From NCBI GenBank assembly GCA_000320545.1, contig ADNK01002290.1:62001-126000 (forward strand): DNA of 64,000 nucleotides. Direction: 5' to 3'. Numbering within the stretch: position 1 is the stretch's first letter; each line of letters starts with the position of its first letter. Below, in pieces: positions 11,701-43,403 of the stretch. Made by a program: the position numbers and the translations under genes. The notes under the pieces were generated by a model. The model did no database searches, had not been told where the DNA came from, and was given only the letters and a program-made list of their open reading frames with translations. The stretch comes from Bigelowiella natans CCMP2755 (lineage: Eukaryota > Protista > Cercozoa).

Positions 11701-14700
11701 CGCCAGCTCTGCGCCATCCTAAATCTGCCTCTACGCACCCTAAATATCCACGGCGGTATGAACGCGGAGGACATCGTGGCTTGGATGGACATACAGATTA
11801 AAGCGTCAGAAATGCTGGAGGAGAAGGAGCGGCTGGTGCTGCTCCTTGACGAGGTAAATACTTGCAATTGTATGGGGCTCTTCAAGGAGATTGTGTGCGA
11901 CCGCTCAGTTCAGGGACGCTTCTTGCCCGAAAACGTCAAGATCATCGCCGCTTGTAATCCATACCGATTAAAGTCTAAGGAGGCGTTAAAAGCAGAGGGT
12001 TGCGGTCTTGTATTCGACCACTTTGAAGGAAAAGCCTTGGGTGACAATGTAGGCACCGGAATCCAAGATCCACTACGCAATCTGGTCTACCGCGTCCATC
12101 CTCTCCCGGAGTCCATGATTGATCACGTCTTTGACTTTGGAGCTCTACCGCCTGAGACTGAAAGCATTTATATTCGTGCTATGCTGCGCCGGCAGCTTGG
12201 TATCTATCTCCGACAGGAGGAGAGTAAAGACAAGAAGGGAGGGGGAGGACATCATGACGGGGAAGGAGACATCAAGCTGAAAGACGGGGGTGCACTCAGT
12301 GAAAAGGAACGCATTAAACAGCTGATGAAACAGGCGATTCAAGGCAAGAAATACGGCAGCAGATATGGCGCTTCGTCGTCTGCCCAGAGAACCCTTGCGC
12401 AAATGATTCAAGAACGACGCCAGCTGGAACAAGCACAACGAAACTCCTTGGGAGGAGGAGGAGGAGGAGGAGGATCATCAGCGTTAATTGGTAGTAGTAG
12501 TAGTAGTAGCAGCAGCTTCTTTGGCAGACCAGCACCACCTCCTACATCAGGCAGCGAGGGGGCTGGGGGCGGAGGACAGCCTCCGATTACTCAGGAAGAG
12601 ATGAAAAAAATGATGGAGGATCTCGAGAAGAATCAGAAGGAGGACGGATTTGTTGACTTTGTGGAGGTGTTTGCCCGCCTCATCTGTGTATCGCAGGAGT
12701 TTGTGCGCAAATATTACAACGGAGAACGAAGCGTTGTATCGCTACGTGATGTAGCGCGTTGTGTTAAGATTTTCAGATGGTTCGGAGAGCATTTTGCTAA
12801 CTATATTGGTAAGAATTCAGAGCCAAAGTGGGATGCAGGAGACTTCTTCAACGTTAAGGAAGTTGCACGAGAACATGTCAGGAGTGCGATGATCATGTCA
12901 CTTGGTAGGTCAATCATTGTTATCATAATTAATAATAATAATAATAATAAATAATAATAATACGAAGAGAAGGAGTCCTGGAAACTGCTTCTGTTGAGAG
13001 GAGGAGGAGGAGGAGGAGGGTGGGGGGAAGGGATAAAAGCAAGTAGCAGTTGAAATAATAGTACTAGTAGTCTGCCGTGCTGTATCCGCGACGAGATAAG
13101 GTTCTGCAAAATTATATAAGAAAACCTTGATTTGGTGTTTCTGTTCCGTCTACACGAAGGACAAACTTCCTGACAAATAGCTGCTTTCAAATTTATGATT
13201 AACGATTTGGAAGAATTATGCCTCTGCTTTCATGTTTGATACTATCACGAATGTTATCCTCACTATCATCTTTATCATCATCATTGTAATAAGTTCCTGC
13301 CTCCCCTCTCCCCCTCATCCTCCTCCTCCTCCTCCTCCTCCTCCTCCTCCTCTCCTCCTCTTTAAATCAGCTTACTGTTTTCACGCTCGGTTGGATCGTA
13401 ATGCACGCCGAGAGTATGGGGTTGCATTGCAACGTGAATGGGAGCGAATGCAAGATCCCATTGGGTATGAGGAGCTCGGTACGTTGTATGCGGCGTTGTT
13501 CGGAGGTACGCCACAACGAGTTCCAAAATATGGGCCCCGTTGCACGTGGCTCGAGCTCAACGCAGGCAGGTTCTCGTCAATCGTTAATGATGTTATGCGG
13601 GCCTTTGTATCACATCTCAAGCTCGGAAAAGGTGAGAAGAATAGTATGTTAGCCTTGCTACTTGAGTCATGGGAGCGTCTTGTTTAGTAGGCTTGAGAGA
13701 ACATCTAGCTAGTAGTAAGATTTACTACAGCGTATTAAACTCTGTGCTGCTGTGCTGCTGCTGTGTGCATCCATTCTTTCGTCACCACAGTATGTGCTCA
13801 TTTTTCAATACTGGTTGTCATTCAATAAATGTTATCATCTTCATCATCCGAAAAAAGGTATCGCTCTAAACGAAGCGCTGCTTGAGAACTTATTCATGAT
13901 TATGATCTCGGTGCTGAACCGAATTCCGATTTTTGTCGTGGGGAAACCTGGTACTTCAAAGTCACTGGCAATGGGATTGATTCAGGCTAACATGAATGGA
14001 GAAGCTTCCGACAATGAGTTCCTCTGCTCTTTACCAGCCGTAGAGGTGTTCAGTTATCAATGTTCCCCTCTCTCCACCAGTGCTGGCATTCAGCAGGCCT
14101 TTGACTCGGCCAGGCGTTACAAGATGCAATCCCCTAACGTAATAACCGTCGTCTTGCTTGATGAGGTCGGTCTTGCCGAGCAGAGCCCCCATTTACCTCT
14201 AAAGGTCCTGCACAAAGTTCTTGATGAGGGTGGAGACTATGCGCTGGTGGGCATCTCTAACTGGTCGCTTGACCCAGCCAAGATGAACCGTGCGGTGCAT
14301 CTCTATCGCCCTGCACCGACGGTAGAGGATCTATCTCGTACGGCTATGGGTATGGTGCAGAGCGCCATGCTTGGTGGGTTTTTGAGGCAGATCGCTAAGG
14401 CGTACAATCTTGTTTATGAAGGACAAAAGCAGAGAGACTTTTGGGGGCTGAGAGAATTCTACTCCACCGTCAAACATATCAATCGTCAGCTGACCGAGGC
14501 AGAGGGTGAAAAGAAGAACCAGCTTGACGGTGATGTCCTTATGAATGCGATTCAACGGAACTTCGGAGGAAAGCCTGAGGAGACGAAAAAAGTTGTAACG
14601 ACGTTCTTTAAGTCTCTCGGTATCTCCGAAACAGACGTGTTGCAGATGAACACGACCGACCTCATCAGCCAAAATATTAAGTCCAGCGAAGCTCGGCATT

Positions 14701-17568
14701 TGATGTTGTTGACGAAAAACAACGCAGCCCTGAAGCTGTTGTTCGACTACAATCTTCTCAAACATGACTCCACGGAGGTGATATTTGGAAGTGACTTTCC
14801 GCTGGACAGAAGCGACTTGCAGATATGCCTTAACTTACAAACACTAAAGACGCATATGGTGCATGGGCGCACGGTTGTTCTTGTCTACTGTGAGTCGCTT
14901 TATGAATCACTTTACGACCTTCTTAATCAGCACTACTCAGAGTTTGGCGGTAAGCAGTTCGTAAGACTTGCTTTTGGTACCAGCAACAAGCTGTGCGAAA
15001 TTCATCCTTCGTTTCGCGTTATTGTGGTTGTGGAAAAGATCGATGCTTACAATCGTCTAGCCCCACCTCTCCTCAACCGATTCGAAAAGCAGGTTATGGA
15101 ACGTGCAAACCTTCTGAGCGAGCTACAGCGTCAAGTTGTCTCCACGTTGCAGAGTTTCTGCACATACTTCGTAACTGGTAAGCAGACTGGGCGTGCAAAG
15201 CTATCAGAACTGAGGGGTGCGTTCTGTGGATTCCATAGCGACTTCTTAAGCTCCCTCGTACAGTCGATGGGAAAGCTCTCTGACCTGGACCAATTTACAC
15301 ATGATTGCCTTATCCGACTACTATGGCTTACCACACCTGAGGCTGTGTGCCGCCTGCTCGAATCACAACAGAGCAAACTCACTATTCAGCAGAACTTTGG
15401 CCTAAATGTCGTAGATACATATTTTCAGACGCAGCACCACTCCGACATGGTGACTTTCGCGGATGGAATGCTGGAGGATTGGTCCGACGACTTCGGATCA
15501 CAGATCTGCCTGCTCACCTTCTCCCCCCTTACATTACAGTCGGGCACTGTGCTACGGGAACAGACTAAGTGGAAAAATGTGACGGTGTGCACACTCCATG
15601 AGATGTCCACCGAGAGAGACCTCAAGCAAGCGGCCACTGAGTTCTTCTCCACAGCGAAAGATGGCTCTGTGTTCCTCCTGCAATGTGACCCTCAGGCAGG
15701 TTCAGTACGCCGTATTGAGCATGCCCGCTACATTCTCGAAAAGTTGCGTGATGAACAGGCCAGGACAGCGGAGAATTATTGTCCTGCTGATGATAATAAT
15801 AATAAGAAGAATAATGATGATGATGATGATGAGTCCGACCAGAAGGTAGAACATTATTCTGTTGATACCAAAGCAGCAGCAGCAAAAGCATCATCATCAT
15901 CATCAGAAGTAGAATCTAAGGAAAAGGAAGACGGCAATGCTGATGCCAATGTTGTTGTTGTTGATGCCAAGGGAAGGAGGATCCCTGCTACTTCAGAATC
16001 CAAAGCTATTGGTCCCAACGATACAAAATCATCACCATCATCATCTGGAGTAGCAGCTACTACTACTACTACTACTACTACTACAACAACTACTACTCCT
16101 ACTCCTGAACTCAAGCGATCTGATAGTGAAGGAGCAGAAGATGCCAAGCACGATGGTAGTAGTGGTCAGACCTCTGGTGTTAGCATTCATGGTAGGGTCA
16201 TAGAAGAAGAAGATGTGGAAAGAGAGCGAAAGCAGGAGGAGAAGAAGAAGAAGGCTGCGACTGTGACAAAGAGTGTTGATGGTAAGGGAATTCATGTTAT
16301 TATTCTCGTGCACCTTCCTCGACGGGATAATAAGTACCTGATCGATTTGGATAAGCGGTGGCGGTATGCCTTCATTGATGATGTAGAGCCTGCAGCAAGC
16401 ACTGGTCTCCCTGACATCAGGAGTATGCTCGATACGAATTTGCAGATGGTCGACATCGTACAAAAATTGGATGTACGTCAGGTACTTCTCATGTCGTTTC
16501 GACAGGCGCTTGCTCGGCTGTCATACCTCAATGCAAGAACGAACGAGGATGTGAAGAAGCAGATCGGATTCTTACTGCGATGTATCCGTCACGACAACGA
16601 CTTCATGACAGTCATCGAGAGCTCATTACTTGACATTATTGGCCAGAGTAACGTACATCTTGACGTTGCTAAGGCCTCAGATAAAGGTGAGGACCTGGCT
16701 ATAGCGGGAACCTTTCAAGCCGCACTCCATCGTCAAATTTTAGACGTAATGTCCTCAGCGTTTGCCATACTCCTCAGTCATGCAGATCGCAACTTGCAGC
16801 TGCGGATGCTGTCTGAATCTAACCTAGGTATACGCGACATTTGGCTTACGCTTTTCTCGCGATCGATGAAAGATCTACAGCTTGTACAAACAGACTTGAA
16901 AGTGATGAACTCGATCGTTGAAGTACCATCAGATGGAACGAGTAGCCAGGCCTTCCAGTCGCGTTTTCCGTTTAGCTTCTTTGTGTATAAGATCCTTAAT
17001 GACTTTCGAGGCCTCACAGAGAACGCTCAAGACCCATTGCGAGCTCTTCAGCAGCAGTTCACGCTAATGAATATTGGTAGCCGTATGGACGAAAAGATGT
17101 CTGTGGAGCTTATCCGTCGTTACATTTTCGACTTCACGTGTATGCACTGCGCCTTCCTCCAAAACATTTCCCGTAAGTCGCAGGCAAACATCGTTTGGTG
17201 TATTTTGAGACTGTGGAATCAAGCAAAGGATCTCCAACTGCTCTCCCAAGTGCATGCGATTTACTACCAATGCGAGCGGTTGCTCGAAGAGGTATTCGGA
17301 TTGATCACCGCAGTCCCAACCGCCACTGGGGAAATCATTAAGTTTGTAACTGAAGAAGCCTCGTTGTTCGGTGCTGTGATGGAGATCGAGCTGGTTGCGG
17401 TAGTAATCAGTGCCTTAAAGCCAGGAGCCCAGGCATGGAAGCATCATGCAGACTACATGCCATGGATGATCATGTTTGAAGACGTCAAGCCCATTATTGA
17501 CGGCATGCTTTTATTCGCATCGAGACGAGGAGGGGGAGTAGAGGAGGAGGGGGAGGATTTCAAGGGAA

Positions 17569-17600
<32 letters not shown>

Positions 17601-19553
17601 AAAAGTAGTAGTAATAAAACTAAGGTCCAAGAGCAACTTGCAAGTGTGAAGAGCCAGTGGGAGAAACTCGTATTCTTCTACACATTTGTTCGGGACGTGT
17701 CGTTGCCAATGAGGGTGGAACCTGCTGACTCTCTCAAGACGCTTGAGCCTATTGATAGCGAGAAGGCAGAGCTGCGTACTAGCTCTACCTTCCGCAGTAT
17801 AATCAAGATGTTCAGTGAGCTTCGTTTCAAAATCATCAACCCTGCTGAGGATTTCCTCTGTCCTATTACCTTGGAAGCTTTCAAGGAACCAGTGGTGCTT
17901 GTGGGGGATGGCAGAACGTACGAAAGGGCTGCTATTGAGGAGTGGCTGGAGACCCACGACACGGCTCCGATGACGAATCTCCCCCTCACTACCAAAGAAA
18001 TTCGACCAAACCATGCAATTCAGGCCAAAGCAAAAGCCCTTGCGTCCGAAGAAAGTCTTGCTACTGCGGCTTCACGTTTCATGGAATTCTACATTTTCGG
18101 GTTGTGTTTTGGTTCCTCCAAAGGAGATGATGGTAGTCATAATGTCAGTGATCCAAAGCTGTTAGTGGATTTTGTGGCGCTGCTCGCTGGAAAGAAGCTT
18201 GGTAGGACGAGTATCGACGTTATGCCTAGTGAGGCTGGCCGAGTTGGGTTATTAAGGTGCATCCTGACACATCCCAATAAGATGCTAAGGGAGAAATCCC
18301 TTACTGTTGTTCTAAAGGCACTCACCGCGACTATCAAGAAGGCAAAGTATCTTGACACGAATCTTGCGGTGCACTACGCTAGTGTCCATGAGCAATTCAA
18401 GATGGAAGAAGAAAAGTGGGACCTAGATGATATGGTTACTGAGATATGCAAGGAGTTGCCATTGTTGAAGGAGGATCAAAAGTCCTTGACTGCTGTGATG
18501 AGCCATGACAAGATACTCCAGCTCATCGCAAAAATTCGATGTGTTCTCAGCAGGGCGGCCTCTGCCCTTGTCCAGTCTACAACTGCGACGACCGTTAAAG
18601 GAGAGAAAGCTAATACGGATGGTAGTAGTAGCATCAGTGGTGCCAGTGATAAATTTCAGCAGCAAGGCAAAACGATATGCATACAATTGCAAAGATTATT
18701 TCAAGTTCAGAACTCGATGAAGCGTCCTATTCGAATGTTCTTCCTCAAGAATTTGGAGAGGCTTCGTGGGGCTACTTTCCTGCGATCAGCTCTGCAACAA
18801 GCGCCATTAGGGACATCAAAATGGATCACAGAGTGGCGAGAGAGTGGCGATGCTGGCTTGATCCGGTTTTTAGGCCAGAATAAACTACCGAAGAACAACC
18901 CCTTTAAGATACTTCCATTCTTCAGTGATGTCGACAATGCCATCGCAGCTGGCATAGCTCCGAACGCAGGTGACTTCGCGTCCCTGCAGAAACTCATCAA
19001 AAGTGTGGAGGGAAATCCGAAGAAAATAGCCCAGCTGAAGGGTGCGCTTCTGGCAGGGGTGTTTCACGAGTGTTTTCTCCTCAAATCACTGCAGGAGATT
19101 CCAAAGTCTACTCTATCAAGGGTCAGAGAACTAGCGAACTATATTCACAGCTCCCAAGACCTCAAGTTCCTCTCTAAGGAAGAGAGGACATTGATTGCAT
19201 TCTTCTGCTTGGATGAATCTAAGCAGAAGCAGCATCACGGCGGCAAGATCAACCCTGCTGTTGAGTACTTCAACTTGGACCAAAAGACCTCAGCCGAAAG
19301 AATCATGCTAATCCGGCTCTGTGTTCACGTCGGAGTGGCGGCAATGTCAAATAGTAGCAGTAGTTCTGGAGGTGGTGGAGGTATCTTCAGTCTTTTCCAC
19401 AGTTTGATCACAAATCCTGAAAGCTTAAAAGGGACCTGGCTGCCTTGTATGGTGGAAGATCTTACGGCAATGGCTGTAGCTGCGCTAGGAGGCCGTTGGT
19501 ACAAATGCTCCAACGGTAACTTAGAAAATAGCATTCGTAGCTTGTATTTCGTG

Positions 19554-19589
<36 letters not shown>

Positions 19590-22500
19590 GTTATCATCAT
19601 CTGTCACATTATCTGGCTGTAAAAGAGAGCATTGCTCTAGTCGTACTTCGTGTTACATGATATTGTCGTTGCCATTGTTGTTATTGTTGTTGTTCAGCTT
19701 TTTTTCCTTCTTTTTCCTTGTTAGTGTTTTGTAATGCAATGCTTCCACTGTTGTTATCATTGTCACTAGGTCACGCATATTATGTTGATAACTGCGGCCT
19801 ACCCATGCAGGTGTGTTTACGTGTGTTATTTTATTGCTAGTATGGGGGGGAATGATATTATTGGGGGCGCATAACTTAACTAAGTATTTGTTTTTCATTT
19901 ATTGATTGAACAGAGCTTTTATTTACCTTTACTGCTTCTCGCCCCATGTATTCGCTCATACGATATATATTTGTTGTTGTCGTTTTTGTTATTTTTGTAG
20001 GTGTTGAAATGCGCCACGTGTGGTGTGAAAATAGGTGGTAAAGACCACAATCCTCTTCCAGGCCAAACTGATCTTGACGGAAAACAGCAAACTCGACAAA
20101 GCGGCGGTGGTCCAACGGCCATAAAGGATCAATCCGAGCCTAATTATTGCCTGAAAGCGCCCAAGGACTCAAAAAGTCCCTTTGAAACTGTGAGAGGGCT
20201 ATCTCCTACATGTAACCGCACAATAAGGACCTTAATGCACGCAGCACTGCTCTTGGGAGCGCTATGTGGTGGTTCTCGGTGGGAGGTAAAGGTCAAGTCC
20301 ATTTGCAATAAAGCTTACGTTGCAACGTCCAATTACGGGCAGTATTTCCTGGAACACATGGAGAACGACTTTGCAATCTTAACTAAGCTGGTGAGAAAGT
20401 CTCAGGACGATATTATGCTGCTACTGCATGCAGTTCTCTCTCCGCTTGAGTCTTTGGAAGGCAAAAACGACAACAACGCACACCAGGCTATTCCACTGGA
20501 GCAGATTGTGCAGTTTGCACACAGAGCAGAAGTAAGGAACAAACTTGCTCAGATGATGCAGCTCCAGCAAGAGGAAAGGAAAGCGCTACAGGCCTCATCA
20601 GGTCAGATGCAACCGCATGAATACCAGCAGCAGTACAAACAGGCAAGTGCCAAATTGAATGTGCTTTATGGTTTGCATAACGCCATGAAACGTGTCCCTC
20701 TGGGTATGATGGGCATGCTGGGTGTTGGAGTCCAGAGGTTCATTCCAAACGGTATGCTGGCGCAGTTTGAACAGAGAAATCCTGACGTATGCGCTTACAT
20801 AAAAGCTGAGCTTGGTCCGATCGTTGTACAGCTATCTGGAGGCGACGATATGAAGGGCTTGGGCACTTGGCAACGACTTAAAGATTCTAATGCCCGTAAT
20901 GCGTGGGAGAGGCTGATGGCAGTTCGCACTGACCCCTGGTTTGAGAGTAAGTCTCTTGCTGCAAAAATTGCTACCTCAAAGTCCATGTTTGGTACTACCG
21001 ACGACGATGAAGGCACTGTCTTCATGAGTGAATTGATGGAAAAGGTTGATGCAACATCGATGCCTACTAAGCTTAGGGCTAAGCTGTGTCCAGCCCTATG
21101 GAGGTAGGTAGGTAGGTAGGTAGGTAGGTAGGCAATTGGGATAATAATACTACTGTGCATGATGATGATGATGATGATGATGGTAGTAGTAGTAGTAGTA
21201 GTAGTAGTAGTATCAACGGTCCATGCATATAGCTGCTAAGTCCCCGTCCATGATTCTATAGATATCGATCTCCGTTCTCGCTGGAAGATTTCACACTGGA
21301 ATTGAACCTTGTGGAAAATATGCAACAAGAGGAAAAGAAGGTCACTCATTCACTCACTCACCCAATCGTCATTTTAAGATTGATCATTTTAGAGAACTAC
21401 ATAAAATATGCGATGACTATTGGATGAGTCACTGACTGACTCCATGAATACTAAACTGCATGGAAACATTATCGTCATCATAACCATTGATCGTCCATAT
21501 TATCTTGACTGTAACCATCACATCGTACTTACTACCACCCACAGACAACGTCGTTTCCTCTTTTAAGCAACTTTTTGAACGAAGAGCAAACATTGAGGCC
21601 ATTGCGGTACCTTCCAGCAGCCATAGAGTTCCAAACACTTCTACTCAAGCGTTTCAATCGGGCATTAGATAGGGAAACAGCGCTTAATATGACGATTAAA
21701 GACGTCTTAAAGACAGCCCCAAACAAACAAAAGTGGAGAGAGGCGTTCGAGGGGTTCAAGAATGCATGGAATCTAGGATGGCGCTTTGTGGAGCGATTCG
21801 GTTGTTTAGAGTTGCCAAAGGTAGTATGTAATAATAAATCAGTAGTAGTAGTAGTAGAAGAAGAAGAAGAAGAAGATGATGATGATGATGGTGATAGCTG
21901 ATTTCCTACAATGTCTATAAATCGCACAACAACAACAACTACTACTACTACTACATACCAACCAGATGATGTATCAAGTGATGACCCCCTCCATTCCATA
22001 AAATCATCATTGTTATTCAGGCTTATAAGGGCATCGTAATGGACGAGAGTATCTCCATCAACTTCTGCATGCCGCAGGAAAAGAACCAGGGTATTTGTGC
22101 CCTTGCCCTAACAAATTACCTTTGCACGAGACACAACCAATTCGTGGAGCTTGTATATGAGCGCCTGCTTCTTCGTGGCGGAAACATGCAACGAATTGAA
22201 GATCGAAAGAGTGTGGTCACTACCAACTTCTTCTCTACGGCGCATGCACTTTCTTATTCTCTCCAAGATAAGTTCTCCCCCTATGTTGCAAAGAATTGTG
22301 TGACGTTCACAGACGATGGTCGCATTGTGTACGACTTTGAGAATGCAGAGCAGTATCTCCTCGATGTGTTTTTTACTGGCAAACCTTTGGTGAAGCAGAT
22401 GGTTCGCATGGTACAGTACCGCGATGATGAGGGTGCTGTCAACACTCACCTCTTCCGTCAGAAGGTCACGCAGGTGGCGCTGTCTCGAGAAGAGCAGAAG

Positions 22501-23701: not shown

Positions 23702-23729
23702 CTTGGTGAGCTCATGTGAACGCAAAAAA
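23702..23729 (+). repeat. Left terminal inverted repeat
   Basis: cttggtgagctcatgtgaacgcaaaaaa versus the reverse complement of the right end, cttggtgagctcaagtgcatgaagaaaa. Confidence 0.8.
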
Positions 23730-24079
23730 CAAGCAATTTCACGGGTTCGAAACCGAAAAAAAGGTGCGATTTGAACACGCGCAATGCCAAAAAAATCCAC
23801 AATTCAAAACGTGGATCAGTTGCGTGCACTTGCAGTGTTGTCACACGCGCGATGTTTGCATGAATTGAAATGGTGGGGAATTGAAAGCTGGGGCCGTGCA
23901 TCTGCGACAGCAGAGCGCATGTTTCTTCAAAAGCGAACGCGCGAAGCGAACTTCAACCAATGCATTGACCGAAGTGCAAACGACATTCGAGTTGAGCATG
24001 CACATGCATCGCACACCAGTGCGCAAACAATGCAGAACACCAGCAAATGCATGTGATTTGATGACAAAAATTGAACGAT

Positions 24080-27000
24080 TCAAGAGCCGATTGCCTCTGC
24101 TTGGCAATCCTTGGTGCAGAAGACAATTCCGTTCTTCACGGACACCACAACCATCACACACGCCTTGTGGCAAACTTTTCCACAGTTCGCACAATTCACC
24201 GCGTCTCCAGCTAGCCAGGTGGGATGGAAGGGCATTGACACTTGCTTGTCATTGGAACATTTGAGCGTGGGATCTGAGGTTCGCCTTCTTTCCATCCGTT
24301 TCCTCCTTTCGAGTTGGGAAGGAGACAAATGGGTTGGCAGTCCTTTCGAATCATCATCATTTCCCAACAAGAAAAAACACTTGCATCATTGCCTGTTCGA
24401 TGTTGACACAACAGATGCATTGACACAAACCTTCGACAGACATTGCACTCTGCACGTCATCGTCCTCATTTTCAGCTTCAGATTGCCCTTTTTCATCTTC
24501 TTCCGTGTTCTCCTCGTTGTCTTCATTGTCACTTTTCGACTCATGTGGCAACACAGCACGATGAAGGTGGTGTCCTTTTTTTGTCTGGACAACTTTGGGC
24601 AAAATCTGATCAATTTCTTTTGATTTCACTTTCGACAAAAGTGCATTTTTTGACACGTCATGTGACTCTTGATGCTGGAAGACACAATCCACCTTGCAAT
24701 CCTTGAAGAGATGAGAATGGAGGCCGTGTCCGACTCCGGGAAAGAGATGCAATGTTCTCTCATCTCCAATGTGGAACCATTCCAAAATCGTGGTCAAAAC
24801 ATGTGCACTCAAAGACCGAGGGAGTTTCGGGTGCGATGTGACCGAGTCTGCTCCAGAATGAGCATCACGTGCAACGTTCTCGTCATGCTGTCCTGGGGCC
24901 TTGGTTTTCTTGCAATTTCCCTTCCGCATTGCAGTGAACATTGTGACCACATTTTTGAGAACTGAACTCTTGGATGCACTGGGCTTGTTTGACATCACGT
25001 TGCAAAAATGCATGATTTCTTCAGGAGAAAATGTGCTGCACTTGTCTCTCATCAATCCACTGTCTTTCTGCGGATGGCGCATTGTCACGGTGCAATCTCT
25101 CTTGTTCTCTTTGCGCATGGTGCTGTGCATCATTCCAAAGAGGTTGTCAATCACTTCTCCTTCAAACTTTGTTCGACCGATCTCGAGATCCAGAAACATC
25201 AATCCTTCAAAAAAAAACAAAACTCAACAATGTGGAAGCATGTCAGAAAAGATTTTCTGACCGACCGCATTTTTTTTGCAGCAGCAGCTGGGCAGCAGCT
25301 TCACTGCTAGACTGCCTCCTGCGTGAAGAGACACGTTTTTCTTTTCGTTGCATGGCACTTGGGTGCCTTTGAGACTTTGGTGGCTCGCACTCTGTGCAAG
25401 TGCATCCAGTTTTTCATGCTTATGAGCTGCCAACACCGGTTTCGGTGTCTTGCAATTTTCACCATGCGGATGTTCACTCTGTTTCAGGCTTGCTGCGCTT
25501 GTCTGGAGCCATCCATCAGATGTGAAATTGTGCTTCTTCTTGAATTCTTCCCAATTGCTGCGATCGTGCTCCTCCATGAAAAGGTGTGCAATTCTGCGTT
25601 GCCCTGTGACAAGAAAAAATGCAGACATTGTTTCCTGTTGAAAGGAGTGATGCAAAGTTGCATGCATCTTTCTTCCTTCAGCACTTTCTTGACGTTCCTC
25701 ATCGAACGTTTCGTTCGTTGGGTCGCTCACGTGCAGGGATGTTTTCGCAGCACGTTCCTCCTCTGGCAAATCTCTTGCGCACGTGAATGAACCAAAATCT
25801 TTTGGGCTTGGCCATTTCAATTTTCCTCGCATGTCAGTTTCAGGATGCCACCGTTTCTTGAACACTTGCCAATTGTCTTCGTTCCGTTTGGAAACGTCAA
25901 CCACAATCTCAAGCAAAGATTTTCCGAATCCTTCTCCCTTCTTGGTGAATTTTTTTGTCGCGGTTTTCCAAGATGCAAGTCTTTGCTCTGCAAACTTCCT
26001 CCCATTCACCTTGATTTTTTTGTTGGCCACTTGTGCCAACCATTGATCTCTGAAGCTGGATGTGACACTTCTCAATTTCGTCGTGACTCTTATTTCATCC
26101 AACACGTTTCGCATTGTGCCGTGTTCGAAGATGCGCTGTGCATCTTCTGGTGTGCAATCCAAGCACATCACCTCAGCGTGAAAAGTGTTGCATCTGACGT
26201 CTTCTTTGTTTTCTTTGTGCAGAGTGTCAACCACAACTCTGCGATGATTGCCACTGATGGTTTCTCCTGGATGCCCCAATTCTGTCAAGGTGCCATTTTT
26301 CACTGCTTTGCGGACCGTGGCAATCAATTTTTCGGGCATGCCAGCATGGGTTCTTCTCATCGCAAAAAGGGGCATTCTCACGATGAACAAGTTGCATGTC
26401 GATTTTTTTCGTCCTGTCTGATCTAATGCTTCGTGTCAATTTCGGGATCTCATCTGATTCAAGCGGTCTGGCACGGATGTCTGACCCTGGTGCTTTGAAT
26501 TGTTCTCTTTTCACGAAACAATGTCCCAATGTTCGTTCGGCTTTCTGCCCATTTTTCCATGTTGTTATTGTTGAGTTCATCTTCATCTTCGCATTGCACT
26601 GCATGGAAATGTGAACTCAATTGGTGTGTTTTCAAAAACAACCAGCGTTCTGTTTGATCACCTCGACCAACTGTTGTGCCCTTGTCACCGAGCTGGAATG
26701 CGTCGTCAACCTTTTCCTCGTTGGTCCAAACGTGAAACAAGAAACATTGGCAGCACTCATTCTTGTTTTGATGTGTTTTCTGAAACCTTTTGTTTTTTCG
26801 AAGGATTCTCATCTTCTTGTTTTTCTGACAGCGATGCGTTGTGTTGTTGGATTTCCGACATGAACTCTGTGCAATCGGAAAAAAATGCATGGTGTCATTT
26901 CAGAATTGAGACTTTTTTTGTTGTTGTTGGCCAACCGCATTTCTTCGTGATGTTCCCTTTGGCAACTTTGTTCGACCTTTCGCTGGTGAAATCATCTTCA

Positions 27001-27300
27001 ACCATGTTCTTCCGAAGCACAGACAATTTTCCTGTTTCTGTGCCGATCAAGAACCAGTTGGGCACTTGTTTGCCGTTGAACTGCCTGGTCTTTGTCTTTC
27101 GCATTGCATGGATCACAGTGTCTCTTCTGGTCACGTTCCCTTCAACAGTTTTCAGAAAAACCATGGAAGCTCTTTGACCCTCAACCAATTCTTTGAAGTG
27201 GTGGTTGTCTGTCTCCACGGGGGTGTTTTTCAAAGACCCTCCCCCTCTCTTCCTCTTTGTAGATGCCTTTCAAAAATGTTTCAACTGAGTTGCAAATGCT
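24080..27300 (-). pseudogene. Transposon cargo: ParB-like domain + beta-class N6/N4 DNA methyltransferase-like fold (degenerate catalytic motif) + PHD-like finger; intron-containing and hypermutated
   Basis: ParB-like DIRARPLESDEIPKLTRSIRS (~26490-26420) and ETISGNHRR (~26260). MTase-like VSLHAGGSLAVKLLP...AVGLMFLDLEIG (compare LYxGDxLxxLxxLP...VDLIFTDPPYG) and HPKLP...ILEWFHIGDERTLHLFPGVG (compare HP.KP...GD.VLDPFxGxG). C-terminal CANCGKVCHKAC...FCTKDC. Confidence 0.55.
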
Positions 27301-27842
27301 TGTTGACATCAGGTGCAATGCAATCAACTCGACGAAGAAGCGGTGGAGGGGTTGCCGTGTCGAAGAGGCTCACAGAAAGGTGGAAATGCGTCAGTGGACA
27401 TTGTGCGTTGCATCAGCACCAAAAAAAAAAAAAGGAAAGCCTGTTCAAGAAAATCAGGCTTCACACATCACAACTGTGCAAACACGGAAGGGCTCATCAG
27501 CAGAGGGGGGGGTGCTCGGGATGGGAGCAAAGCCACCATCTTCCAACACAGGAATTTTCCGCAAAAGCTTTTCAAATGCGGAAAAGTGGAGAATTTTTGT
27601 GACATTTTTTTCATTTTTTTGAGGTGGATTTGCAAAACATCAAAATCAGAGGAATCTCCATTTGCTCTTTCTAGCTTTGGTTGATGAACACAATGAAATT
27701 GAAAAGTGTGAAATGCGATTTCAAAACAAGAAACAATGCACGCATGCTTTCTTGTTGGTTTTGAAAAGTGGAAATCGAATTTGAATTTTCATTCATTGAA
27801 CACGTGTTTGGATGAAATTGGAGCACACACGTTGCAAACGCA

Positions 27843-30496
27843 ATGTGCAATTGTTGTGTTTGCAGAAATCGGAAAAGGCAAAAAGTTGATTTTGCGCACG
27901 GAATGAAAAATGGAACACTGAAGTGTCATCACGAATTGAAGAAGCTTGAAAGCCCAACAATGAAAGAAGTCTTTGATTGCTTGACGACCAACACACCTGA
28001 CAGAGAAGACGGCATTTTTGCAAACAATTGTCATCGGAAACAATGCACCTGACCTGATTTGCATCACCTAGGTTCACAAGGAGGACGTCCATTTTCAATG
28101 CACATCCATTTCTTCGGTGCTGAAACTTGTCAAGTTCGCTGGCAAGCTAGGAAACATGATTTGAACAAACTGTTGGAGAACAAACTGACAAGGAGGGCTG
28201 TCAGATCTTTCGTGACAATCGCGATGCTGTGTTTGAGTTTGAGGTTTCAAAAGATGGATGACGTGTGGAATTCAATGAAATTGGCACTGAAGTTTGGAGG
28301 TTTGTCGACATCTGGATTGTCACTGCTCACCGGAGCTGGACTTGGCAGTTCGCGATCGAAAGCCCAACGTTTGCACCAAAAAATGGTTTCAGACGAAAAA
28401 GAACGTGTTGAATCGATGAAGCCCACCGTGGAATGGGCCGATGATTTCAACAGAAATTCAGCTGTGCAGCTTCCAAAATTCAACTCAGTGTGCAAAAGTT
28501 GTCAATGGACAGTTGTTGTAGCGAAGCATCATCCCAGCATCAAAGAACCTGTTCTTTGCATGGAACAAAATCAAATTGAAAGGAAATCAACAGTGCCAGA
28601 CATCAAACAATGCTCTTCACAAAACTCAAACTTCCACATTGACGTGTTGAACCATGATCATGATCGCGACCATCTTGCTGATTCACTCGTTGCAAAATGC
28701 AACGTGAGATCAGCACCGTCAAAATTGACGAAGAGTGGATTGGATGATGTGCATGCACCTGACAGTGATGAATGCAAGAAGCTCCACAATGCAATGATCA
28801 AAAAAGTTGACGGACCAAGGCATGTGACTCCGTTGAAATTGATGGGCTTCAACATCGGCAGCACTGAAGGGATGATGACTTGTTCAAAAGAATCATGATC
28901 ACAATCTGTCGAAAGAAGACATCCTGGAGCAATCAAGATCGCAGTTGTTGATTGTCAGATGTGTTGGCGCTTGATGAAGGTCATTTGAAAGTGAACAAGA
29001 AACAATGCAAGTGCTTTTTTTCCTGATTTGTTTTTCGCAGGTGCATTGGTCTTCAAAAACTGCCACAGAAAAATGTGGAAAGTGCATGTTTCCTGCTTTG
29101 GGCTGGTGGCATTCTTGCAAGCAAATGAATCTCACATTGTGGGCAAGATTCAAGTTTGCAAATGAGAAAGTTTTCAAAGGCTTGTTTCCAGTCGGAAACT
29201 TCTGCGACAAACCTGAATGTTCAGGTCAGATCGTTTGTGTGTTTTCATTGATGAGAGAAGCAGCAAGGAAAATGAAACAAGAACTTGATGGCCTTCATGC
29301 TGATCTCAGAGCTCACACGAACAAGTGCATTCACTGCTGCTCTGAACCAAGTGACACTGAATCTGAGATCAAATTGAGGGAGTTGCTCCATCTTTTGCGT
29401 CATTTCATGCCTGTGACTCAAGATCATGGACTTTCGATGAAGAACGACATGTTTGAGACTGCACGTGCTTTGCACACGAAAATGGTTCTGATGTTCGCAA
29501 ACTTTGAGCACAGAGAACGTGTGCGAAACACACTGTGTTTTGACATGGTCCTCAGAAGCATTGAGCAAGAAAATGGCCAGTTGTGGAAATTCATCAAGAC
29601 GTCCCCCAACTGGTTCAATGAAGAAAGCGGAGAAACACTGAACTCCATGTTGGCGACGAAAATGAATCGTGACCCCAAGCTAGCAAGAGGGGTGAAGTGA
29701 AAAGCATGAATGACAAACACATTGTCACAAAGAAAACAGAAAACGTGGGAAGTCACACGAAAGTGCGAAAAGGGTCTCGGTCTTGCACACTTGACAACAA
29801 GAAAAGATGATTTCGATGGTGATTGCAAGAACATTGACACCACCGTCAGTGTGTTGCGACAATTCATCAATGTGCATGCAAGCACATGGAATGAAGAAAA
29901 AAAAGACAACGTGAAAAGGACTGCAATGTGCTTCAAATGCCAAGCTGCAGAGAACATGGAAGACGACGAATGGGCAGTTTGCAAAGATCTTTCAATGAGA
30001 AAAGACAGAACATTGCACACGTTGAAATGTGATGAGAACCTGACTAGCTGACATTCAGAAGCATTGACGAAGCAGATGATGTTCATGAAAAAAAACACAG
30101 CCAATTTTTTGAAGGAAAAGAAGACGTCGTCGTTCATGAGGACCTCAACGGCAACTTTGTGTGACAACAACATGGGGAATGTCAACAATGATGTGGAACC
30201 GCTGGATGTTGAGGTTTCAAACCACAATGGCATGACAAACTTCAAAACCACACAATGGATTGACAAAAATGACAATGAGCGTGTTGTTTGAAGAGCCTTT
30301 TTTGCATTGCCAGGTGGAAGATGCAGAAGAAAAGGAGGATCACAAATTGGCAGAGCAACCTCGATGCCAAATGAGAATTCGCAATGACAGAACATTTTGT
30401 CCGAACGACTGGAACGAATTTGATGTCGAAGAAGAAACAGACGATGATCCCACAATTGATTCTTCAGAGGAATCAGAATCGAGTTTCGCACCATGA
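27843..30496 (+). pseudogene. Putative DDE (RNase H fold) transposase, with a 61-nt intron at 28980-29040 and in-frame stops; hypermutated
   Basis: Ordered motifs VEWADDFNR, AVVDCQMCWRLMK|VHW (back-mutated VVDYQIYWRLIKVYW), FPALGWWHSCKQ (LGWWHSYK), FNEESGETLNSML give candidate D, D, H, E residues. Lies between the TIRs. Confidence 0.65.
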
Positions 30497-31067
30497 GTTC
30501 CAAAGACATTGGTCGCCCATGCATTGCAGTTTTTCCGTTTTGTTCATGCAATGTGAATGGTCTTGCACATTCAAATTTTCAGCAAACAAGAAAAACTGTG
30601 GGCATTTTTTCCTGTTTTGTGTGAATGCCCTGGAATTAGTTTTTGGAGTGTGTCGATCCATCTTTGTCACTTTGCTCTGCGCGATCATGAAGGTTTCAAA
30701 ACCAACTGCATGAAGTTTTTGATCACTCAACAGTTCGGTTCTGTTCCCACATTCTGCCTCTGTGCAAGTTGTGATCTTTTCGGTCAGTTTGATTGCTGTC
30801 AATCTTGCTTGTGACAGTGTGTGTGTTTGGGCATTGCGTCTTGTGCAATGAGCTTCGCGGCCTGAGAGTTCGTGCTCGTGCCAAAATCATGCCAAATGCT
30901 CAGAGCTGGTGGTTGCGTTTGAATGCTGTTGTTGCACTCATTACTCTTGCCAATGCGTCGCGACGCTCAACTGCTGCTGTTCATGCGCACGATCAGGCCA
31001 GGCTTTCGGACACGTTGTTGCGTTGCGCTTTTGATGCTCGTGTTGAAAATGAGCTCGGATTTGAGCA

Positions 31068-31095
31068 TTTTCTTCATGCACTTGAGCTCACCAAG
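31068..31095 (-). repeat. Right terminal inverted repeat
   Basis: ...tgagctcaccaag at 31083-31095 is the reverse complement of 23702-23714. Confidence 0.8.
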
Positions 31096-34924: not shown

Positions 34925-36330
34925 TACGTGCTGTTGGCAAGCAGTGGCAGGCAGTTGCAATGAACAAATTCAACCACAGAAGTCCATTTTTCATCGAAGA
35001 AACTTCGTAACTCAAGAGTCGAAATAAAAATCAACGTGATTGGCTGAAATTAAGAAAAGGGAGTTCAATGCTTGTACATTTACGAAGAAACTTCAAGATT
35101 CTCACTCCAACTTTTCTCCTGTTTGAGCTGCACGACTTGACTTTGCTCCAATGGGAGCATTTCTGTCTTTCTTTCTTTCTTGCAAAGCATGAGAGACGCA
35201 ACTCTGAACGTTGTGAAGCCAAGGAGAATGCGCACGTAGGGTTCCTTGATCTCATGAAAGCTCATCAAGGCACGGGAACCATCGTCATGGTGTGAGACGG
35301 GTTTCTTGCTTTGTTCCACGAAACATTCCACGAAACTTTCCACTTCTTTTGGCGTTGTGAGTGCACTTTGCTGAGAATGATGAGATCCAGTGCACCAGCT
35401 GACAGTGCTGTGCAGAAGTGTGTAAAACACAATCACATGTGTCTAGATGTGCACGCGCAGGCTAGCAGGTAGCTAGCTAGCTAGGTGGACACGCACAAGT
35501 GCACAACACACATCAGCCCAGTTGGTTCGCCGGTCTGTCAGGCTGGCAGGTTTCACGTGTCACACGGCACGGGTGCACAGCTCGTGGTTCGCGGTCACCA
35601 ACGAGTCTGAGCTAGCTAGCTAGCTGAGTGCATGCACCACACCTGCCATGCCAGCATTCATGCACATTGCTAGCATTGCCAAATTGGCACACCAACAGTC
35701 TAGCTAGCTAGCAGTCCATCCTGGCGCAGTGTCATGCAAAAGTGTGCACAACAATCGCGAAGCATGTGCCGCGGTTGGACACGCACAAGCGCACAATGTT
35801 GCGTGCGTGTGAAGCACGTGCACGACTACTGCGACAGGTGGCACTCGATCGTTGGTGACCGCAAACCGCACCATGCTAGCATGAGCTGTGCTCGCGCACA
35901 ACCTGCTGGATCTAGCAGTCTAGCAATGCTGCGAACTGGCCTCTGTGTGTCAACAACCCGGGCCAAAGCTGCGGCGCTGTTGCTGGCTCATTCATTGTAC
36001 ATGTTGATCATGTTGTGTCATGCACGCGACTGCATGATGGACATGTAATATCACAATAGACAAAGTATATATCATCTGAAATTACTGTGTCTACAATCTG
36101 CGAACGTTCGCACGCCCGTTCCTGCTACATCATGGTAGCTATAGCTAGCATGTGTGGTGTGCCTAGCTAGCTAGCCATGAACAGGAGCTCAATGATTCGG
36201 CGTGCGATGCACACTGTTTTTGCAATCTACCAATGCAAGTAAGATTGCCTAGCTTTGTTAGACAGTGTCCCTCCCAAGTCTAGAAAGTCCACCGCTAGAC
36301 AGGTAACAGGTACGTGCATGGTGTCGTGCA
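34925..36330. mobile_element. Degenerate repeat/TE remnant, TpA-depleted and rich in (CTAG)n
   Basis: TA is nearly absent in ~35080-36045 except in CTAG. Shares cattgccaaattgg (35674) with 42734, and gcctagctagctagccatgaac (~36160) with ~31423. Confidence 0.6.
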
Positions 36331-42023: not shown

Positions 42024-42757
42024 TTAGCAAGTTCAATTTGGCAGCATGTTGCGCTGCACAGCATCATGATGTGTGCCTAGGCATTTTCTGATGCAATCAA
42101 CCGGCCATGTGTTTGCCGTCCACAAACTGATTGACATGCTAGATGTGGCAGCTGCAACAGAGACCTAAGAGTGAACGCACGTCTATCTTTCTCGCTGCGC
42201 GCACGCAAACCTTCATTGTTGCAGTTCTGTAGAGTTGCGCTTCGATTTGATGCAGAGAGCTGATGCGGGCAGCGAGTGCACACGGGCAAGCTAGCATAAT
42301 TAGCAAGGTGGCAGGTCGTCGTGCCTGTAGCAGCTGGTGTTTGCATTGGTTGTTGCGACAACAGCAATGGTGTTGCTGGCCATGCATGCGCGCACATTCG
42401 TTCAGACGCACGTCGCGCGGCGCGGCTGCGAAACACCAGAACGAGCTGCCGCTGATCGATGCGACAAGGACCTGGACGCACGTCTGAATCGGACGTGCTA
42501 GCGTGATGATAGCTAGATGGCATGTGCACACTCCAGATGTTCGTGTTGTGCGTGTGCACAGTGTGCACTGTCTAGACTGTGTCCGTTGTTCCATTGTTGC
42601 TCTCAAGACTGCTGGCTGGCACACTCCAGATGTTCGTGTTGTGCGTGTGCACTGTGTCCGTTGTTCCAGTGTTGCTCTTAAAACTGCTGGCTAGCTAGCT
42701 AGAAGCATCTGTCATTGCGCCCACTCCAGCACTCATTGCCAAATTGGACACTGCTAG
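42024..42757. mobile_element. Candidate MITE-like element within a TpA-depleted patch (42020-43195)
   Basis: Imperfect inverted ends ttagcaagttcaatttggca versus (rc) ctagcagtgtccaatttggca, with a perfect 10-bp core. Interior lacks most TA except CTAG. No TSD identified. Confidence 0.45.
42526..42693 (+). repeat. Tandem duplication (93-bp and 75-bp copies)
   Basis: gcacactccagatgttcgtgttgtgcgtgtgcac... begins at 42526 and 42619. Confidence 0.9.
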
Positions 42758-43403
42758 CTAGCTAGACTGGCTGCTGGCGGGCTAGCGGGCTAGCGAGGGC
42801 AACAACAACTCCAGAACTGGTCACAGCCGCGGCTTCCATGTTTGTGACCTGTCAATGCATTGCAAGCCACTCGCTGCGCCGCGTGCAGTGCACAGTCGCA
42901 TGAGTGTGCGGCGCGACAGTGGACGTGAAGAAGTTTGGAGGGCCAGGGAGCTAGTTGCTTTGCTCGTGCCAGCATGGAAGTTTGGATTGACAAACAATGC
43001 TCACAGGACTTGATGGGAAAATCTCCCTCGTCCGTCGCGTTTGTGTTTGATTGACTGTTGAATGAGTGTGAATGAATGATTGCAGATTGACGTTCACTTC
43101 GATGAAGAAGCAATTTGATGAGGTTTGAGGCATTGCCACGCATCAGGAGGAAGCATTTCAAAAAATGGTCAGTCGCTGCAGTCAATGAATGTGCTTTTAG
43201 GCGCCAATAATTTAATCATAATGGAGTTTTTTAGATGTCGCATTCGTAAAATGTAAGGGAAACAACAAACATCCTTTATCGACAAGAGGACATGCTACGC
43301 TGAAAATTTCCAGCTGATTTCGATAGAGACAGAAGGGGTGCGCAACACTGACAGACAGACTGACAGAACAACACACCCAGCGATTAGTAACATTATTCGC
43401 TAA

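Follow-up and report, generated by a model that had tools for sequence, protein, structure and literature searches.

How a block of chromosomal DNA comes to contain almost no TA (TpA) dinucleotides, while the sequence on either side of it retains them at normal density, is the question raised by a locus of the cercozoan protist Bigelowiella natans CCMP2755. The locus lies in a 64,000-nt stretch of contig ADNK01002290.1 (assembly GCA_000320545.1, positions 62,001 to 126,000 of the forward strand; C1447:62001-126000 in the assembly searched, which comprises 91.4 Mb in 3,736 contigs), hereafter the window, and spans positions 23702-31095 (C1447:85702-93095), which are bounded by terminal inverted repeats (TIRs) and are referred to below as the element. 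The TA deficit of this region is the result of mutational conversion of TA to TG or CA on both strands, within a mobile element, and very probably reflects the saturation of a DDE transposon copy by a TpA-specific hypermutation process of the host. The core of this finding is already known, and credit for it belongs to a 2026 preprint on the same species (Mettrop et al., bioRxiv 10.64898/2026.01.13.699255).

The element holds exactly 15 TA dinucleotides, versus 568 expected from its base composition and approximately 450 expected at the observed/expected ratio of the flanks (0.79); its own ratio is 0.03, and the deficit with respect to the flank rate corresponds to a Poisson P of ~3e-168. CA and TG occur at 1.58 and 1.59 times expectation, respectively, and their joint excess above host-like levels (~350) is similar in size to the TA deficit. 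AA presents an observed/expected ratio of 1.41 and is hence not depleted, leaving TA as the only dinucleotide affected. Each of seven consecutive 1-kb bins inside the element contains 1-3 TA (observed/expected 0.01-0.04), whereas the remaining bins hold 25-113. The nearest TA instances outside the element lie 8 bp before the left TIR and 28 bp beyond the right TIR, and TA density just outside both TIRs is normal, at about 1 per 14 bp. An earlier interpretation made from the letters of this DNA (hereafter the sequence-only reading) had claimed a near-total loss of TpA with a sharp onset at the left TIR and TA-rich flanks; the counts bear this out, and the same abrupt limit is found at the right TIR.

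The loss of TA has direct consequences for the coding appearance of the element. TAA and TAG together occur at 1.5 per kb, versus 30 per kb in the flanks, and TGA is present at 29 per kb; the removal of TAA and TAG with retention of TGA generates long open reading frames (ORFs) in all six frames, across which the element presents 28 ORFs of at least 100 aa. The ORF of its second gene (ORF B, gene B) contains no Tyr in 383 aa, with Cys and His making up 8% of residues, and its transposase gene (gene A) retains Tyr at 0 of 23 positions. The sequence-only reading had described almost Tyr-free, Cys/His-rich proteins and had attributed the accumulation of spurious ORFs to loss of TAA and TAG, and both statements agree with the residue counts and stop-triplet frequencies. 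The specific examples it gave fared less uniformly. It had proposed LGWWHSCK and DCQMCWR as altered forms of LGWWHSYK and DYQIYWR; in the closest relative the two segments are LGWWHSCK and DCQTFWR already, but the consensus of the wider family at the former column is indeed Tyr (67%, within the motif GxWHxYK).

The direction of change was assessed by comparison with homologues outside Bigelowiella. A word-indexed protein search with an element protein matched only B. natans proteins, and an exhaustive profile search with gene A returned 145 homologues, mainly from marine metagenomes and including one from the chlorarachniophyte Amorphochlora. Homologues outside Bigelowiella, the Amorphochlora protein among them, display normal Tyr content (2-8%). 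The closest relatives are encoded by three metagenome contigs (L034, L035 and L036), with 62-64% amino acid and 66-70% nucleotide identity to gene A. The gene A region was aligned with L034 over 1.9 kb at ~68% nucleotide identity. None of the 85 TA sites of L034 is conserved in the window, where 50 of them read TG (32) or CA (18); all other L034 dinucleotides are conserved at 16-60%, and no TG or CA of L034 corresponds to a TA in the window. At the protein level, the 23 Tyr residues of the relative are read in the window as Cys (11), His (4), Phe (4) or other residues (4), and never as Tyr, with Trp kept at 13 of 13 positions and Cys at 10 of 11 in the same comparison. The marine metagenome relatives (L029-L032 and L034-L036) have TA observed/expected ratios of 0.39-0.59 and CA/TG ratios of 1.2-1.55, and may be partly hypermutated copies residing in wild chlorarachniophytes or may simply be TA-poor. 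They include a six-gene element of 8.29 kb with 41-bp TIRs that is 99.9% identical across four samples with differing flanks; L029-L032 originate from JGI metagenomes 3300060409, 3300060387, 3300060444 and 3300060372.

At the DNA level the only match to the element in the assembly is the element itself, which is thus single-copy. Protein searches with two of its ORFs identified paralogues (~30% identity) that are distributed over seven further contigs and whose open frames reach 796 aa. Each of these loci is a TA-free island of 3-10 kb (on contig C222, ~8.5 kb are devoid of TA outside CTAG), and together they constitute a sister family of 5-6 copies that are 85-96% identical. In the alignment of these copies, 126 sites are split between CA and TG, and the next most frequent class of double difference comprises 11 sites (~11-fold fewer). 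Since CA and TG are two substitutions apart and each is a single substitution away from TA, split sites imply a TA ancestor and separate changes in the different copies. A total of 248 ancestral TA sites can be inferred; TG and CA occur at ~1:1 in every copy, and pairs of copies agree about half of the time. One copy (C2208) is only half mutated: at its 124 surviving TA sites, the other three copies read TG 170 times, CA 154 times, TA 27 times and another dinucleotide 21 times, in all combinations. Gene B of this copy encodes eight Tyr residues that are Cys or His in the other sister copies. The sister copies were therefore mutated independently after their separation, as the sequence-only reading had expected of related copies when it called for their alignment.

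The half-mutated copy (C2208:61842-69480; L015, L022) has a fully erased transposase half, and in its other half TA persists at 111 of the 248 sites inferred to have been TA in the ancestor; within a single element, erasure is hence regional. Another sister element (C274:5148-18343; L045, L017, L024), flanked by a matching CGAG duplication, is split by ~5.7 kb of DNA with normal TA content, which is a younger, unmutated insertion inside an erased element. Some sister copies have TA-poor flanks. No transcription-linked strand bias of TG versus CA was found in the sister family, nor any relation to gene orientation; for gene A against its relative the TG:CA counts given above yield P=0.065. JGI Bigna1 gene models 70429 and 147291 (P0001 and P0002; 774-776 aa, 0% Tyr) correspond to hypermutated transposase copies. 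TA-erased open frames are thus entering the B. natans annotation as genes, and an "intact" TA-free ORF is no proof of function.

The few TA dinucleotides that survive are not randomly distributed. In the element, 7 of the 15 residual TA instances are part of a CTAG tetramer, as opposed to 4% of flank TA (P=8e-7). In the sister alignment, TA retention was 0.35 in CTAG, 0.26 in CTAC, 0.21 in GTAA and in CTAA, 0.15 in GTAC, 0.12 in TTAA and in ATAC, 0.08 in ATAG, 0.06 in ATAA and 0.03 in ATAT. The mutator therefore has a context ranking, with ATAT erased fastest and CTAG slowest, that is reported here for the first time.

The general phenomenon has been described by Mettrop et al., in a preprint dated April 2026, through mutation accumulation in B. 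natans (bioRxiv 10.64898/2026.01.13.699255). For an integrated nucleocytoplasmic large DNA virus (NCLDV) and a virophage insert, the authors report a rate of ~6e-7 mutations per site per generation, in some lines only, with 230 of 231 mutations being A>G or T>C, all of these at TpA; the main hypermutable region is single-copy (bioRxiv 10.64898/2026.01.13.699255). They further describe 124 clusters with TpA depletion, along with 324 coding sequences of low TpA content among which DDE and RT domains are enriched, and propose an ADAT2-like DNA adenine deaminase, Bn78255, as the enzyme (bioRxiv 10.64898/2026.01.13.699255). The window element belongs to the class defined in that work, as it combines TpA depletion, A>G/T>C change at TpA only and on both strands, and a mobile origin. 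Two statements of the sequence-only reading require revision in this light. Its assertion that no described system matched the pattern is outdated, and its description of the process as repeat-targeted is not supported, since both the element and the main hypermutable region of the preprint are single-copy. The text of Mettrop et al. makes no mention of CTAG, of a flanking-base preference, of NNNN-CTAG-NNNN scars or of this transposon family.

According to the favoured reading, an element with CTTGG...CCAAG ends, carrying a DDE transposase (RNase-H-like, with a large helical insertion) and a ParB/DndB-like gene, would have been exposed to a host process that converts the A of 5'-TA-3' to G on either strand, yielding TG or CA. 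Erasure would have reached ~97% saturation and raised GC content from roughly 39% to 44.5%, turning Tyr codons into Cys or His codons and ATA into ATG or ACA, and removing TAA and TAG, with the outcome that frames would be open and proteins ruined. Scars in the form of 8-bp NNNN-CTAG-NNNN insertions would have come later, two of them breaking the transposase gene. The chemistry, we infer, would be DNA adenine deamination by a candidate ADAT2/TadA-like enzyme, and targeting would proceed via chromatin state or small RNA rather than via copy number. Action in place, after insertion, is favoured by the sister family and by the preprint, and would extend to the window copy.

Several observations weigh against this interpretation. 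The closest relatives are already moderately TA-poor (observed/expected 0.4-0.6), and part of the deficit may therefore predate the window copy. The window copy has no sister copy of its own, and post-insertion timing is drawn from the sister family and the preprint; the 4-mers that flank it, TGCA at its left end and ATGT at its right, do not match as a target duplication would. Spreading chromatin would be expected to give less abrupt limits than those of the erased region, where erasure does not leak even into the 8 bp beyond the left TIR, and the sister copies with TA-poor flanks blur the targeting rule. The agreement, to a few bases, between the limits of erasure and those of the element argues for element-precise targeting over diffuse chromatin spreading. 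Lastly, a ranking in which TAG is slowest does not match ADAR, nor natural ADAT2 substrates, whose 3' neighbour is mostly G or A.

Error-prone repair synthesis (polymerase-eta-like, with a WA motif), or misreading of a modified T or A within TpA, would be an unlikely substitute for deamination, although the palindromic TA target and the graded context ranking would equally fit a modification enzyme that reads dinucleotides, and the disfavour of a 3' G is unlike the preference of ADAR. Polymerase eta also hits AA and has strand bias, however, and neither the exclusive targeting of TA with abundant AA nor the lack of strand bias conforms to it. The genome contains, moreover, both TadA/ADAT2-type and ADAT1/ADAR-type loci (approximately six deaminase loci of the TadA/CDA type and one of the ADAT1/ADAR type, with the single A_deamin locus on C2414), and the preprint names an ADAT2-like candidate.

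A second possibility concerns timing. If TpA had been erased before landing, whether at a previous locus or while the copy was extrachromosomal, the element would have arrived TA-free. The abruptness of the limits at the two TIRs, beyond which normal TA resumes at 8 bp and 28 bp, and the half-depleted state of the metagenome relatives would speak for this order of events. We consider this improbable. The sister copies were mutated independently after separation and one was caught half-way in place, the preprint demonstrates hypermutation of DNA that is already integrated, and the TA-poor flanks of some sister copies suggest in-place action with spreading. A transposase with all its Tyr residues replaced is, in addition, unlikely to mobilise its own copy, though mobilisation in trans is conceivable.

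The third explanation dispenses with mutation altogether and assumes that the family is intrinsically TA-free by selection, for instance through evasion of a TA-directed nuclease or mutator, with functional Cys/His-rich proteins. The sequence-only reading had named homologues equally devoid of TA, with intact ORFs, as a finding that would speak for intrinsic composition, and the seven paralogous loci, all TA-free and with long open frames, at first appeared to be just that. On inspection they are not, because these homologues were hit independently, one of them is half mutated, and conversion of TA to TG or CA creates no stops. Given that TGA arises only from TAA, such conversion never makes a stop codon from a sense codon, and open frames are therefore expected anyway and provide no evidence of selection; gene A of the window is, for its part, broken by insertions and scars. 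The CA/TG splits and the half-mutated copy point to independent decay from TA-containing ancestors, and every outside homologue contains Tyr, as does the less mutated copy. Together with the outgroup comparisons, these observations led to the rejection of a selected TA-free composition as highly improbable. Errors of assembly or base calling, and reverse transcription of edited RNA, can practically be dismissed, as the pattern occurs at many loci with copy-specific outcomes, is seen in Illumina mutation-accumulation data and is mirrored in JGI gene models with 0% Tyr, and the non-transcribed ends and intergenic parts of this TIR DNA transposon are erased equally on both strands.

The element ORFs and their homologues gave no match above threshold against Pfam, PHROGs or NCBIfam. 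An AlphaFold model of a full-length transposase homologue (P0147, pTM 0.73) was used as a fold test. Foldseek found no match for this model in the PDB, and in an exhaustive structure alignment 36 of the first 38 matches were DDE transposases or retroviral-type integrases, at modest Z values (5-8.7). The best structural matches were the P element (Z 8.7, 303 residues), Tn5, Hermes, ISCth4 and RAG1. Among predicted structures, the nearest (TM 0.54-0.58) belonged to clusters of DUF6589, an uncharacterised eukaryotic family, with hAT, IS66, CACTA-type and RAG1 proteins next, and DUF6589 was also nearest by language-model features; a literature search on DUF6589 returned nothing useful. The family alignment reveals a conserved D18 (90%; at the end of strand 1, W-x-D-N), D183 (100%; after the fourth strand) and an NEExGE motif (85-87%) that follows a helical insertion of ~250 residues carrying GxWHxYK. 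Gene A of the window retains the corresponding WADD, VVDC and NEESGE, as candidate D, D and E residues. Gene A is thus predicted, from the modelled fold and these motifs, to be a DDE transposase with an RNase-H-like core. A giant-virus or transpoviron-like origin, prompted by the size, TIRs and hairpins of the element, was also considered and was rejected given the lack of PHROG and Pfam matches and the fold of the largest gene as a DDE transposase. Three homologues in the transposase family, including P0027, carry a C-terminal chromodomain (best E=1.4e-4), which could direct insertion into marked chromatin and offers a lead for the gathering of scars in particular islands.

For the second gene, the least mutated sister copy matches DndB with E=1e-4 and 22 bits (below the cut-off of 29.1) and TIGR03187 with E=0.008; gene B of the window matched no DndB/DGQHR model, and shares the GNHRR motif with the sister copies. 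Its ORF runs ~85-130 codons beyond its likely original end, probably due to erasure of the original stop codon. Gene A is broken by three real defects, namely the 12-bp insertion with a TGA and two 8-bp scars; its apparent frameshift at the intron is no defect, since the intron lies at the position found in the relative.

The termini and target duplications place the element in a group. A 20-nt terminal word of the sister family has 27 sites in the genome versus 0 in the control, and a 13-nt TIR word of the window element occurs elsewhere in the genome at about chance level. Perfect 4-bp target duplications flank 6 of 7 complete sister elements (ACAT, ACGG, CGTG, CGAG, CATG and CCAG), and deletion derivatives of 130, 855 and 1,151 bp are present. 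Judging by these features, the sister elements are of the cut-and-paste type. Both Bigelowiella families start with CTTGG and end with CCAAG; the distant 8.29-kb metagenome element, with its 41-bp repeats, starts with CTCAGGGG, and its flanks are chimeric between contigs. The window element is a member of an unclassified group of DDE transposons with CT...AG termini and 4-bp duplications, which is newly described here.

This group is a candidate source for the CTAG scars. Identical 4-mers flank 5 of the 7 CTAG instances of the element (NNNN-CTAG-NNNN), and two of these five break gene A. Over the whole window, 29 of 154 CTAG instances are flanked by identical 4-mers; for the other 4-base palindromes that are not repetitive, the share does not exceed 2%. 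Among tetramers lying between identical 4-mers in 189 kb of the genome, CTAG ranks first (12.7%), followed by CTGG (3.7%) and CCAG (3.1%), with a background of ~2% or less. As CTGG and CCAG are TA-mutated derivatives of CTAG, the scars themselves have been hit by the mutator, and CTAG is slow to mutate rather than immune. The scar duplications present C at position 1 in 56% of cases and G at position 4 in 40%, and 27% of them follow the CNNG pattern, versus a background of 4.9% (P=5e-9); CNNG is also seen in 8 of 11 element duplications. It is tentatively suggested, as a conjecture somewhat short of an even chance, that excision of DDE elements of this group, with their CT...AG ends, 4-bp duplications and C..G bias, left the NNNN-CTAG-NNNN scars found across the B. 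natans genome; other families sharing these properties could likewise have produced them. The scars are concentrated in these TpA-erased islands, where the TpA mutator attacks them as well. If excision by this group is indeed their source, a single system would link a highly active cut-and-paste transposon to the compartment in which it lands and to the hypermutation that defends against it.

Two TA-poor, GC-richer intergenic islands elsewhere in the window (35081-35827 and 42328-43198) have 12 of 19 and 12 of 17 of their residual TA in CTAG, respectively. They contain five runs of exactly three CTAG, some in the form ACTG-(CTAG)3-ACTG or CAGT-(CTAG)3-CAGT, an arrangement that would be compatible with an element having inserted again into an older scar and then been excised. 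Some scar duplications in these islands differ solely by TA>TG (GTAG/GTGG, ATAG/ATGG).

The coordinates of all features are compiled in the table below. Six occurrences of a palindrome of ~42 nt are distributed over the element, near likely gene 3' ends and in the gene A intron; the motif may serve as a terminator, an intron element or a binding site for a protein. Neither the genome nor Pfam contains a homologue of the 287-aa open frame. Approximately 4 kb to the left of the element, an open frame of 1,956 aa with a U-box domain occupies positions 13752-19622 (+).

Table. Features of the TpA-erased element, in window coordinates.
Feature	Position	Strand	Remarks
Whole element, TIR-bounded DNA transposon copy, TpA-erased	23702..31095		7,394 bp
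Left TIR	23702..23729	+	28 nt; begins CTTGG; same CTTGG...CCAAG termini in sister family
Right TIR	31068..31095	-	ends CCAAG; TIR pair 82% complementary
Gene A, predicted DDE-type transposase remnant	28173..30200	+	62-64% aa identity to metagenome relatives, ~30% to 792-aa sister ORFs
Gene A intron, GT-AG	28980..29040	+	61 nt; only in-frame candidate; joins ...CWRLMK to VHWSSK... as in relative
12-bp insertion in gene A	28891..28902	+	relative to metagenome homologues; contains in-frame TGA
CAAG-CTAG-CAAG scar	29676..29687		8-bp insertion (29676-29683) versus L034 and L036; gene A frame shifted
CTGA-CTAG-CTGA scar	30040..30051		8-bp insertion (30040-30047) versus L034 and L036; gene A frame shifted
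CCAG-CTAG-CCAG scar	24207..24218		
ACTG-CTAG-ACTG scar	25303..25314		
CTTT-CTAG-CTTT scar	27667..27678		
Gene B, GNHRR motif	25224..26390	-	weak ParB/DndB (DGQHR)-like match; sister homology covers 25755-26303
287-aa open frame	24357..25220	-	open frames expected here by default
Palindromic motif, reference copy	27724..27765		42 nt; AACAAGAAA...TTTCTTGTT
Palindromic motif, other copies	24365-24406, 25607-25648, 26735-26776, 30584-30625		
Related palindrome in gene A intron	28993-29019		also present in relative L034

The transposon and the process that erased it can each be compared with known systems. As in the P element, hAT (Hermes), Transib (RAG1) and DUF6589 proteins, the transposase would have an RNase-H-like core with D, D and E residues, the E following a helical insertion of ~250 residues with a conserved Trp. 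It differs from these families in the absence of any Pfam model at threshold, in its CT...AG termini and in the ParB/DndB-like second gene, and the target duplication of the sister elements is 4 bp, versus 8 bp in hAT and P and 5 bp in Transib. Membership of hAT is contradicted by the 4-bp duplications, and no match to Dimer_Tnp_hAT or any other hAT Pfam model was found. The scars resemble the excision footprints of Tc1/mariner elements, which consist of the target duplication plus 2-3 terminal nucleotides per end, in that NNNN-CTAG-NNNN can be read as a 4-bp duplication plus CT and AG; the transposase family and duplication length are different, however, and the link to excision by the group described here is putative.

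A formal analogue of the mutation process is fungal repeat-induced point mutation (RIP), which is likewise a host process that introduces dense transitions in a dinucleotide context on mobile DNA, on both strands, and spares neighbouring genes. RIP changes C to T mostly at CpA, creates TpA and stop codons, and requires duplicated sequence and a sexual cycle. Here, in contrast, A changes to G at TpA, and both TpA and stops are destroyed (TAA and TAG falling from 30 to 1.5 per kb); the window element is single-copy, and the mutations of the preprint arose in vegetative lines. The sequence-only reading had called the change opposite to RIP, and A:T>G:C substitution at TA on both strands, confined to a mobile element, is indeed the reverse.

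Dense transitions with a strict 5'-neighbour rule are also produced by APOBEC3 on retroviral cDNA, by ADAR on repeat dsRNA, and by TadA/ADAT2 and TadA-derived base editors. ADAR and the deamination of tRNA A34, which is preceded by U33, share a 5'-U/T preference, and ADAR prefers a 3' G. The process described here differs from these deaminase systems in its presumed substrate, chromosomal double-stranded DNA, in showing no strand bias and in having 3' G as its least favoured context. The footprint follows the 5' T rule of ADAR and departs from its 3' G preference (TA retention of 0.35 in CTAG versus 0.03 in ATAT), and untranscribed ends are erased too.

The process matches that of Mettrop et al. 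(bioRxiv 10.64898/2026.01.13.699255), which shares with the window element the species, the TpA target, A>G/T>C change on both strands and the enrichment of CpA and TpG. That work differs in representing live mutation in inserts that are partly depleted or not depleted, as opposed to the saturated end state in a DNA transposon seen here. No eukaryotic hypermutation of invading DNA that is dinucleotide-specific and of the A:T>G:C type had been reported before the process of the preprint, which may point to a natural DNA adenine editor of very tight context specificity. To this, the window locus adds a clean, saturated DNA-transposon example, a named candidate transposon group for the CTAG insertion scars, and a flanking-base ranking that any candidate enzyme must reproduce.

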